Source: Macrostomum lignano | Lineage: Eukaryota | Length of the DNA stretch: 64,000 nucleotides | Reading direction: 5' to 3' | NCBI GenBank assembly: GCA_002269645.1 | Contig: NIVC01002233.1 | Location: forward strand, 17,306-81,305 | Part shown: piece by piece, positions 28,255 through 30,518 of the stretch | Layout of the letters: each line of letters begins with the position of its first letter | How positions within the stretch are numbered: position 1 is the first letter of the stretch | Program-made: the position numbers and the translations under genes | The notes under the pieces: model-generated | The model's database searches: none | What the model was told of the DNA's origin: nothing | The model's input: only the letters and a program-made list of their open reading frames with translations

Positions 28255-30358
28255 CTAAGCGCTGAGTCCACAGCCGGTGGCAGCAGCGGGCAGCCGCGAG
28301 CAGGTGAGCACGCCAGCCCAGCCTGGGGGTGTCGGGGGTGCAGCCTCGCTCGGACAGCGGTAGGTGGCCTGCCGGAACACAGGCTGCCTGTCGGCCAGCT
28401 GGAACCGCAGTCCGGGGCCGGTGAACAGCCGCTGACTTGCCAGATTATCGTCGCCAATCTTTGCCAGCAGCTGGCCAGGCTGAGCACCCAGCGCTTCGGA
28501 CAGGTAGGCAATCAAGCACTGGACAGCCTCGCGGCCCAGGCCCCTGCCTCTGTAGGCCGGTTCGGCTATCATCACTTCGAGTTCGAACTCGCGACCTTCG
28601 CGAACAACCTCCTCGTTGTCTTGGTTGTCCTCTTCGACGGCTCTGATGTTGGGAATTAAAAACGAATTCACGTCGCCAATCATTGCCGCCAACTCCGCTG
28701 CCGGCTGGCGTTGCCATGGCAACGAAGCTGACTCTTTGTTGGACGCCTGGCGGATAAACAGGAATGAAAGACGCGGCTGCCGTTTAAAACATGCACGAGT
28801 CCCGATTTCCAGTATACTAATTAAAGATTACATAGAAGATTGTTGGCGATAGTATGACTAACCGCGGCCAATTCTGCTTAACTTTGCATGCTTCTGCACT
28901 TACAGCAGCTAAGGCGTCTCCACACTCCTTACCGCAGCTGGACCCCACACCCCTGACCGCAGCTGGACCCCACACCCCTGACCGCAGCTAGACCCAACAC
29001 CCCTGACCGCAGCTGGACCCCACACCCCTGACCGCAGCTGGACCCAACACCCCTGACCGCAGCTGGACCGGACCCCACACCCCTGACCGCAGCTGGACCC
29101 CACACCCCTGACCGGAGCTGGACCCAACACCCCTGACCGCAGCTGGACCCCACACCCATTACCGCAGCTGGACCCCACACCCCTGACCGCAGCTGGACCC
29201 CACACCCCTGACCGCAGCTGGACCCCACACCCCTGACCGCAGCTGGACCCCACACCCATTACCGCAGCTGGACCCCACACCACTGACCGCAGCTGGACCC
29301 CACACCACTGACCGCAGCTGGACCCCACACCCCTGACCGCAGCTGGACCCCACACCCCTGACCGCAGCTGGACCCCACACCCCTGACCGCAGCTGGACCC
29401 CACACCCCTGACCGCAGCTGGACCCCACACCCCTGACCGCAGCTGGACCCCACACCTATTAACGCAGCTGGTCCCCATAAGCGCAAAGAATCCACTTACC
29501 GGCACTTTAGACCCCATAGCGGATTCCAGAGTGTCTCTGTGCAGCACAATAAAGGTCAACTTGTCGTCTGAATTGCGCCAACTACGCTGCATTTCGAACT
29601 CTTCCTGTCAAGGACCGGGTACAGTCATAGAGGGTAAGGAGGGTAAATCATTGTGGAGAATCTTTCCTGATAATAGGCGGGTACAGTCATAGAGGGTAAT
29701 GAGGGTAAATCATTGTGGAGAATCTTTCCTGATAATAGGCGGGTACAGTCATAGAGGGTAATGAGGGTAAATCATTGTGGAGAATCTTTCCTGATAATAG
29801 GCGGGTACAGTCATAGAGGGTAATGAGGGTAAATCATTGTGGAGAATCTTTCCTGATAATAGGCGGGTACAGTCATAGAGGGTAATGAGGGTAAATCATT
29901 GTGGAGAATCTTTCCTGATAATAGGCGGGTACAGTCATAGATGGTAAGGAGGGTAAATCATTGTGGAGAATCTTTCCTGATAATAGGCGGGTATGGTCAT
30001 AGAGGGTAATGAGGGTAAATCATTGTGGAGAATCTTTCCTGATAATAGGCGGGTACGGTCATAGAGGGTAATGAGGGTAAATCATTGTGGAGAATCTTTC
30101 CTGACAATAGGCGGGTACGGTCATAGAGGGCGAATAATCTTCATCTCGATCTCTAGCAGTCGGCAATAACGCAGTTACAAATACCGGCCGGATAATGAAA
30201 ACTGAACAGCTCACCTCTAGGCTAAGAGGCTCTGACGCCGTGGCCTCCAATATATCAGGCTGCAGCATCCACTGGTGGTAGCGGGTCACGTGATAAGCTT
30301 CATACGGCACCAGCACGAGAGACTGGCTAACGCAGTAGGAGAATTCATTTAATCTCAT
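28255..30358 (-). CDS. NAT9: N-acetyltransferase 9-like GNAT protein, ~246 aa; exons 30358-30215, 29604-29500, 28746-28255
   Basis: MRLNE...[18 protein letters not shown]...[30 protein letters not shown]/...MIGDVN...[20 protein letters not shown]...AKIGDDN matches the NAT9 family as I recall it. Both junctions are phase-0 GT-AG. Confidence 0.92.
28930..29472. repeat. 25-bp minisatellite (CCGCAGCTGGACCCCACACCCCTGA)n in NAT9 intron 2
   Basis: Direct tandem array. Confidence 0.95.
29617..30130. repeat. 62-bp minisatellite in NAT9 intron 1
   Basis: About 8 units of GGGTACAGTCATAGAGGGTAATGAGGGTAAATCATTGTGGAGAATCTTTCCTGATAATAGGC. Confidence 0.95.
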
Positions 30359-30518
30359 TTTGCTGCTGCTGCTGCAGACGCCTCTGACGTCTGGCTTCTT
30401 CTAACTCGACTGGCAGGTCAGACAGGGGCTTGAAGAAGCGGTGCACGAGCTCCGAGCCTACAGCCGCCGATGCCAAGAATACTGCTGTGAATTTGACAAA
30501 CTGCCAGGTGGATCCCAT
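30345..30518 (-). CDS. BRAWNIN: BRAWNIN/C12orf73 (UQCC6)-like mitochondrial microprotein, 57 aa
   Basis: [58 protein letters not shown] hydrophobic helix followed by [11 protein letters not shown] matches the recalled human motif GAEVVHRYYRP. The ORF is below the size cutoff of the ORF track. Confidence 0.78.

Follow-up and report, generated by a model that had tools for sequence, protein, structure and literature searches.

A small open reading frame overlaps the start of NAT9

We analyzed a 64-kb stretch of Macrostomum lignano DNA (contig NIVC01002233.1, assembly GCA_002269645.1; called the window below, and base-for-base identical to the fetched locus L001) in which a short open reading frame (ORF) of the BRAWNIN/UQCC6 family overlaps the 5′ end of NAT9, a gene for a GNAT-type acetyltransferase. 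Coordinates are window positions, and both ORFs lie on the minus strand. A sequence-only reading of this DNA had proposed the pair as a candidate bicistronic locus. Two more near-identical copies of the BRAWNIN-NAT9 region, L002 and L003, are present in the genome, in keeping with the partial duplication of the genome known for the sequenced line (PMC8629364).

NAT9 was modeled as three exons with GT..AG borders: exon 1 at 30215..30358 (48 codons, MRLNEF...SLE, followed by a GTGAGC donor), exon 2 at 29500..29604 (35 codons), and exon 3 at 28255..28746, which ends in a TAG stop at 28257-28255. The product of 246 amino acids (aa) is identical to GenBank PAA59764.1 and contains the Pfam GNAT domain Acetyltransf_3 (E=3.3e-12); 684 homologues named NAT9 (alpha/beta-tubulin N-acetyltransferase 9) or N-acetyltransferase 9-like showed 35-44% identity over 80-94% of the query. 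Its N terminus, MRLNE, aligned with residue 1 of human and trematode NAT9, which identifies the ATG at 30358 as the true NAT9 start. Upstream of this ATG, the NAT9 reading frame is open from 30400 and closed by a TAG at 30401..30403.

The small ORF comprises 57 codons and a TGA (30345..30518; ATG at 30518-30516, TGA at 30347-30345), which corresponds to contig positions 47650-47823. The NAT9 gene has the identifier Mlig032180.g1, and its paralogs are Mlig019531.g2 and Mlig022367.g1. The ORF list and the coordinates confirmed the earlier statement that it ends 14 nucleotides (nt) inside NAT9 in a different frame: within the overlap (30345..30358), ..AAT GAG ATT AAA TGA of the small ORF is read as ATG AGA TTA AAT GA. 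in NAT9 codons 1-5. The two ATGs are 160 nt apart (1 mod 3), placing NAT9 in the +1 frame relative to BRAWNIN. On the minus strand from 30640 to 30358, ATGs occur only at 30518 (BRAWNIN) and 30358 (NAT9), so 30518 is, as had been claimed, the sole ATG between an acceptor-like site at ~30609 and NAT9. The two ORFs share one strand and one exon, with no ATG between their starts. Since the small ORF lies on the same exon as NAT9 exon 1, both very probably belong to one transcription unit. The three GenBank NAT9 entries all begin at the NAT9 ATG, so the small ORF is apparently unannotated.

Family membership of the small ORF

The small ORF matched PF14990 (DUF4516) over profile positions 7-42 of 46 with 28.0 bits (E=1.7e-6), above the curated gathering cut-off of 27 bits. 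Two small proteins, P0127 and P0128 (E ~3e-4), were recovered when the 57-aa peptide was searched with phmmer against 1.84 billion representatives; both show the family-typical MPAGxxWxQY...VHxYYxPL pattern. When an alignment of the phmmer relatives was used as a profile, 415 proteins were found; all 120 of those listed carry PF14990 and, where named in NCBI or UniProt, are called BRAWNIN, UQCC6, C12orf73 homolog, or sloth 2. We also built a custom hidden Markov model (HMM) from 112 database proteins of the family, named or unnamed, none of them from the window. In six-frame translations of the 64-kb window, the small ORF was its sole match (44.5 bits, E=5.4e-12). The HMM check proposed with the sequence-only reading, which had named the absence of a match as grounds for rejection, thus returned a match with both the Pfam and the custom model.

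In an 18-sequence alignment the small ORF retained the five invariant columns (G2, G21, V25, H26, and P31) and the W, and three near-invariant tyrosines were replaced by phenylalanine, giving a conserved G..VH.FF.P core at residues 21-31. The peptide is hydrophobic at about residues 6-25; the rest is charged, with a strongly hydrophilic C-terminal half. A crude hydropathy test, made with no dedicated transmembrane predictor, gave a peak Kyte-Doolittle 15-residue mean of 1.75 at residues 7-21.

A word-indexed search with the single 57-aa peptide gave no match, which reflects the sensitivity limit of the index and not absence. Exact look-ups of the 57-aa product and of gene model P0001 (described below) in a large gene-position index found no called gene, and the copy of the PDB that was searched held no BRAWNIN-family chain. 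No second BRAWNIN-like ORF was present in the 64-kb window or the two paralogous loci (~22 kb each), the only DNA searchable.

Membership in the BRAWNIN/UQCC6 family is established at the sequence level, and we consider the small ORF very probably a genuine BRAWNIN/UQCC6 orthologue (sloth2 in the fly). ORFs shorter than 100 aa are routinely missed by TransDecoder at its default minimum length. TransDecoder was the ORF caller for the M. lignano genome (PMC5730564). The function of the family is known from vertebrate and fly work (PMC9681215), by analogy with which the product would reside in the inner mitochondrial membrane and act in complex III assembly.

The same pair in a metagenome contig

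A BRAWNIN-NAT9 pair was also found at positions 1293-2120 of a 6461-bp eukaryotic metagenome contig (ENA ERZ25070786, contig ctg61553l; L008 below). Its BRAWNIN ORF begins MSAGLNWFEYIVRASFIFFGAFCGAEIVHLYYRPLDGL..., matches PF14990 with 29.6 bits and the custom HMM with E=1e-12, and ends in a TGA; an intronless NAT9 (MRLNEH...) follows on that strand after a 6-nt spacer. Only TGA GTC TGG separates the two ORFs, which share a reading frame. In an alignment, L008 NAT9 was 44% identical to M. lignano NAT9 and 46-52% identical to sponge, mollusc, insect, nematode, and frog proteins, indicating that the L008 organism is not a close relative of M. lignano. It is very unlikely that the same adjacency and orientation arose by chance in two organisms whose NAT9 proteins are 44% identical, the rough odds, by our estimate, being one in tens of thousands per genome for any given ordered gene pair.

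The L008 intercistronic stretch holds neither a spliced leader (SL) acceptor motif, [T/C]TNCAG, nor a poly(A) hexamer. The sole [T/C]TNCAG within 1200-1520 ends 6 nt before the BRAWNIN ATG, and the first poly(A) hexamer (ATTAAA) lies 86 nt past the NAT9 stop. PEX3 starts about 150-180 nt past that stop, so the spacing of BRAWNIN-NAT9-PEX3 looks operon-like; PEX3 is absent from the M. lignano window. The 219 nt between the L008 ATGs contain no other ATG (P=0.006 when mononucleotides were shuffled, 0.014 when codons were), and of the windows on the contig, 1.6% on the plus strand and 0% on the minus strand are ATG-free. Selection for leaky scanning, or at minimum for dicistronic translation of NAT9, would be expected to leave such a stretch.

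Conservation among the three M. lignano copies

The small ORF is intact in all three paralogous loci, and its only differences among them are one synonymous change, one V-to-I replacement, and one in-frame CAG insertion or deletion. The extra CAG, in the poly-Q run, is carried by L003. In the three-copy alignment, 1.2% of columns were variable in the 160 nt that code for BRAWNIN only, compared with 9.9% in the 91-nt leader just upstream (Fisher p=0.002) and 10.3% in all aligned non-coding DNA (Fisher p=2e-5). The 3′ flank had 9.6% variable columns, the alignable parts of the introns 3.8% and 13.4% (intron 1 alone versus BRAWNIN only, p=0.21), and the NAT9 exons 0-3.3%. This comparison gives modest support for selective maintenance of the small ORF. 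In L003 (9700-9840, the paralog of window 30519-30640), the leader has gained an ATG (TTCATGTCC), which opens a 12-codon upstream ORF (uORF) ahead of BRAWNIN.

Transcript signals around the overlap

The putative 5′ leader, at 30519..30607, runs from the predicted start behind an acceptor-like AG (30609-30608, tattcattag|CAGCTG, exon start at 30607) to the BRAWNIN ATG, and in the window copy it has no ATG. The AG follows a pyrimidine-rich (ATCT)n microsatellite of ~198 copies (777 nt, 30615..31391, minus strand), which may be part of an outron or of promoter-proximal DNA. The start contexts of the two ORFs differ: BRAWNIN has ccgcATGg, with no purine at -3, and NAT9 has caaaATGa. CAAAATG was called the optimal start heptamer in the fly sloth study (PMC9681215).

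The M. lignano spliced leader is CGGTCTCTTACTGCGAAGACTCAATTTATTGCATG, and the acceptor motif enriched at its sites is [T/C]TNCAG; ~30% of the genes (45% of conserved ones) are SL trans-spliced, 15% lie in operons, and the operon intercistronic spacer has a mode of about 100 bp (PMC8629364). Just before and at the NAT9 start stands the string CTGCAG CAGCAGCAG CAAA ATG. The sequence-only reading had suggested trans-splicing at this CAG run, and CTGCAG (30372..30377, minus strand) does fit [T/C]TNCAG, which makes it a candidate SL acceptor; an exon spliced there would begin at 30371, 13 nt ahead of the NAT9 ATG. Only two matches to the motif occur in 440 nt. Use of this site would place the terminal ATG of the SL in the BRAWNIN frame, opening a 9-codon uORF that runs across the NAT9 ATG out of frame. 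An 8-bp hairpin at 30372-30391 on the minus strand (CAGACGUC AGA GGCGUCUG) ends at CTGCAG, just before the CAG run.

An ATTAAA hexamer at 30348..30353 (minus strand) falls within the overlap and precedes the BRAWNIN stop by 3 nt. It is the sole AATAAA or ATTAAA on the minus strand from 30520 to 27800, where ~1.3 are expected by chance. Its possible use as a poly(A) signal for a short BRAWNIN-only mRNA is suggestive only. Predicted RNA folding of 30609-30300 was no better than that of shuffles (z=-0.53), and an Rfam scan of the window returned no family.

Gene models that span the two ORFs

Three older UniProt/WormBase-type models, P0001, P0124, and P0125, start before the NAT9 ATG. P0001 and P0124 begin directly after the in-frame TAG at 30403-30401. 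P0125 (UniProt A0A1I8GFE2) begins with FVKFTAV..., from the seventh codon of the small ORF, which directly follows TGGCAG at 30500, and fuses BRAWNIN to NAT9 by skipping 22 nt with GT..AG ends (30405-30384, GTTAGAAGAAGCCAGACGTCAG) that are present in all three genomic copies. An intron of 22 nt is far below workable spliceosomal intron sizes, and the fusion is probably an annotation artefact. In flatworm annotation, polycistronic RNA evidence is known to give rise to chimeric gene models (PMC12582326). The three models suggest to us that the RNA evidence ran unbroken across both ORFs; we read no more into them. The 5′ boundary of P0125 follows an AG and could represent a genuine SL site; the terminal ATG of an SL added there would be in the BRAWNIN frame (MFVKFTAV...).

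Other NAT9 and BRAWNIN loci

An SMIM4-BRAWNIN arrangement is known in the fly, choanoflagellate, sea squirt, and lamprey (PMC9681215). In two of the BRAWNIN loci surveyed, L004 (5590-6201) and L005 (5627-6274), the ORF directly upstream is of the SMIM4/sloth1 type, and no NAT9 (Acetyltransf_3) gene was called. Proteins P0148 and P0226, from Logan gene calls, contain PF15114 and PF14990 within one product and illustrate the classical sloth1-sloth2 tandem. A two-sequence HMM found no SMIM4/sloth1-like ORF in the 64-kb window or the paralogous loci, and this model is so weak that a divergent copy could escape it.

Among NAT9 loci, an ENA metagenome eukaryotic contig (L009) had no match to the BRAWNIN HMM. 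In a drosophilid-like Logan contig (L010), no gene was called in the 290 nt upstream of NAT9, and no six-frame HMM scan was made. On contig JTDE01002552.1 of the trematode Paragonimus skrjabini miyazakii (L006:316-842), RPS25 lies 98 nt upstream of NAT9 on the same strand, a candidate RPS25-NAT9 operon; flatworm NAT9 may often occupy a downstream position in operons, behind upstream genes that vary.

How BRAWNIN and NAT9 could be expressed

We lean toward a model in which BRAWNIN and NAT9 are the first and second cistrons of one mature dicistronic mRNA, the BRAWNIN ORF lying inside the 5′ leader of NAT9, and we hold the model as a whole with moderate confidence. Scanning ribosomes would reach the BRAWNIN AUG first, and in its apparently weak context (ccgcAUGg) some would initiate and make BRAWNIN, predicted from its family to be a single-pass inner-mitochondrial-membrane microprotein for complex III assembly. 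The remaining ribosomes would scan 157 nt without an AUG and initiate at the NAT9 AUG in its apparently strong context (caaaAUGa). An SL trans-spliced NAT9-only mRNA, made from CTGCAG and beginning 13 nt upstream of the NAT9 AUG, may coexist with the dicistronic mRNA. We prefer leaky scanning because the architecture of L008 is clean, the features of the window are permissive, and the older gene models span the junction. The bicistronic proposal of the sequence-only reading is strengthened by the shared exon, the lack of an ATG between the two starts, the spanning models, and the L008 pair; it is not proven.

Several observations weigh against this model. The lack of an ATG in the 157 nt of the window is not significant: 22-24% of 157-nt windows lack one, and shuffling gave such a stretch with a probability of 0.11 (mononucleotides) or 0.76 (codons). 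In L008 the order of start contexts is reversed (gtcATGt for BRAWNIN, with G at -3; tggATGa for NAT9, with T at -3), so weak-then-strong is not shared. The paralogs are very young, which leaves the conservation test with low power, and the difference between the BRAWNIN-only segment and alignable intron 1 was not significant. Both CTGCAG, just ahead of the NAT9 start, and ATTAAA, at the end of the BRAWNIN ORF, fit an operon-like resolution. The synteny check that had been proposed recovered the pair in L008, but BRAWNIN was absent near NAT9 elsewhere: in the 841 nt of upstream contig available for Paragonimus, within 10 kb upstream in scallop, and within 3 kb at 80 JGI metagenome NAT9 loci (65 of them with >300 nt upstream).

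These signals bring in the alternative of an operon-like unit with overlapping signals, in which one pre-mRNA would yield monocistronic, mutually exclusive mRNAs, as the sequence-only reading had inferred for trans-splicing at the CAG run. SL addition at CTGCAG (30371) would make a NAT9 mRNA and destroy the BRAWNIN ORF, and cleavage directed by ATTAAA, tens of nt into NAT9 exon 1, would make a short BRAWNIN mRNA and destroy NAT9. Such a unit would resemble the C. elegans operons of the "SL1-type", in which the upstream 3′ end coincides with the downstream trans-splice site. We regard this unit, with both of its processing steps, as possible and of lesser likelihood. It gains from the fit of CTGCAG to a motif with just two matches in 440 nt (PMC8629364), from SL trans-splicing of ~30% of M. 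lignano genes with 15% in operons, from the ATTAAA being the sole canonical hexamer in 2.7 kb of strand, and from TTTCAG and TTGCAG motifs before the coding sequence (CDS) starts of the adjacent adenylate kinase (ADK) and nuclear-receptor genes, which make the geometry usual at this locus. It is set back by the position of the acceptor upstream of the BRAWNIN stop, unlike the classical order of poly(A) site, ~100 nt, and acceptor: both the stop (30347-30345) and the ATTAAA lie downstream of 30372-30377, with no intercistronic spacer. An SL added there would also open the 9-codon out-of-frame uORF over the NAT9 AUG, the older gene models reach upstream of 30371, L008 has neither acceptor motif nor poly(A) hexamer between its cistrons, and the hexamer and the 6-mer motif are each near chance expectation. 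The leaky-scanning and operon-like routes may coexist.

Separate genes, with NAT9 transcribed from its own start inside or just after the BRAWNIN ORF and a separate, overlapping BRAWNIN transcript reading into NAT9 exon 1 or through the whole gene, would be the default for adjacent eukaryotic genes, and nothing specific speaks for them here; the overlap leaves a promoter no non-coding room, the 160-nt BRAWNIN-only segment evolves like coding DNA, the 6-nt spacer excludes such an arrangement in L008, and gene models span both ORFs, all of which render it improbable. Nor do we give much credence to the small ORF being unexpressed as a protein, whether as a decaying remnant or as a uORF that regulates NAT9 irrespective of its peptide, an idea that we rate as quite improbable. 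Its N terminus (MGSTW) does depart from the family consensus MPAGVSW, near-invariant tyrosines are phenylalanines, the Pfam score is just 1 bit over the cut-off, and the product has no gene on record. However, all the invariant family columns are kept (custom-HMM E=5e-12), all three copies preserve the ORF, altered solely by synonymous, conservative, or in-frame differences, no other BRAWNIN-like ORF was seen in the window and the two ~22-kb paralogous loci, and the missing annotation is explicable by TransDecoder overlooking ORFs of <100 aa. Least credible of all, and very improbable, is a BRAWNIN-NAT9 fusion protein, produced by a +1 frame change or by loss of the 22-nt segment 30405-30384 and anchoring NAT9 in a membrane by the BRAWNIN helix. 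P0125 is exactly such a fusion and the NAT9 frame is open from 30400, yet the 22-nt intron is too small, those nucleotides are present in all three copies, no recognized frameshift signal is evident, flatworm annotation is known to yield chimeric models as artefacts (PMC12582326), and in L008 the ORFs share a frame with a TGA between them, which leaves no shared route to a fusion.

A broader version of the leaky-scanning dicistron, which we think unlikely, is that BRAWNIN-NAT9 is an old, selectively maintained dicistron in several invertebrate lineages, where it would replace the ancestral SMIM4-BRAWNIN pair and couple the two functions. It would have been overlooked because the small ORF was never annotated. 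The coupling, equally doubtful, might consist of co-regulated dosage or of NAT9 acting on BRAWNIN or other mitochondrial targets.

Comparison with known systems

Drosophila sloth1-sloth2 (SMIM4/BRAWNIN) is a bicistronic gene for which leaky scanning has been demonstrated, with a weak upstream Kozak context and a strong downstream CAAAATG (Bosch et al. 2022, PMC9681215). This background, which the sequence-only reading had given, is correct. In the fly, a BRAWNIN-family microprotein is encoded with a second ORF on a shared transcript, and M. lignano appears to share this layout. The cistrons are near-abutting, 5 nt apart in the fly and 6 nt apart in L008, with a 14-nt overlap in M. lignano, and the fly has, as M. 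lignano appears to have, an upstream AUG in a weak context; in both, the downstream AUG sits in CAAAATG. They differ in that BRAWNIN is downstream in the fly and upstream in M. lignano, in that the ORFs overlap in M. lignano, and in the partner: SMIM4 is a sloth2 paralogue and complex partner, whereas the M. lignano partner is an unrelated 246-aa, three-exon GNAT enzyme.

Vertebrate BRAWNIN/UQCC6 (C12orf73) has PF14990, an N-terminal hydrophobic helix, and a G..VH.YY.P core in common with the small ORF. It is larger (67-71 aa in most mammalian entries versus 57 aa), and it is a stand-alone gene on a chromosome other than that of SMIM4 (PMC9681215). The flatworm peptide has instead an MGSTW N terminus, FF for YY, and a poly-Q tail set by the NAT9 overlap.

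The SL operons of flatworms and nematodes, including the C. elegans SL1-type, likewise hold tightly packed, functionally unrelated genes on one strand with an acceptor motif before the downstream ATG. In contrast to these, the BRAWNIN and NAT9 coding sequences overlap with no intercistronic region, and the upstream stop lies beyond the candidate acceptor, so that both mRNAs could not be made from one pre-mRNA molecule. The leaders of MIEF1 and SLC35A4 encode upstream microproteins, which are conserved peptide-coding uORFs. The M. lignano locus resembles these in that the 5′ leader of a canonical mRNA encodes a conserved microprotein, small and of a membrane or mitochondrial type; unlike them, BRAWNIN is an ancient, widely conserved gene that is separate in other animals and is not lineage-restricted.

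The sequence-only reading had been aware of no description of this pairing, and in the literature searched we likewise found no paper that pairs BRAWNIN, C12orf73, or UQCC6 with NAT9, nor NAT9 with "bicistronic". BRAWNIN-NAT9 looks like a real, previously undescribed two-gene unit. It places a candidate complex III assembly factor in a model flatworm with no such gene on record, and it illustrates how ORF callers with a 100-aa floor conceal conserved microproteins in the leaders of other genes. It would be a second natural BRAWNIN architecture, with BRAWNIN as the upstream cistron of an unrelated enzyme, and would bear on the origin and translation of eukaryotic dicistronic genes. M. lignano is tractable, with stable transgenesis and published SL, 5′-end, and poly(A)-end data sets. 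If the pairing proved widespread, a link between NAT9 and mitochondrial respiration would be suggested that had not been suspected.

Neighboring genes and repeats

The neighbors of NAT9 lie on the same (minus) strand: a nuclear-receptor gene upstream at 33907-36019 and the ADK gene downstream at 19026-19745. The annotated ADK CDS (window 19745; L001:20614) begins directly after a TTTCAG acceptor motif, and the nuclear-receptor CDS (window 36019; L001:4340) begins 6 nt past a TTGCAG and directly after an in-frame TAA. Both look like SL trans-spliced genes. GenBank CDS starts at the locus follow inconsistent conventions, falling after TTTCAG in ADK, after TAA in the nuclear-receptor gene, and at the ATG in NAT9. 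Because of this inconsistency, we dropped the idea of reading transcript 5′ ends from CDS starts. The locus tag BOX15_Mlig019531g2 was likewise rejected as a marker of the "second gene of a transcriptional unit", since its suffix just numbers the copies within a 95% sequence cluster (PMC5730564).

Long, well-preserved tandem arrays occupy the NAT9 introns and flanks: a 40-mer repeated 18 times at 27500-28227, starting just after the NAT9 stop; a 25-mer repeated 22 times at 28920-29477 in intron 2; a 62-mer repeated 8 times at 29616-30130 in intron 1; and a 34-mer repeated 40 times at 31750-33123, upstream of NAT9. These arrays produce the long spurious ORFs around NAT9 in the mechanical ORF list.

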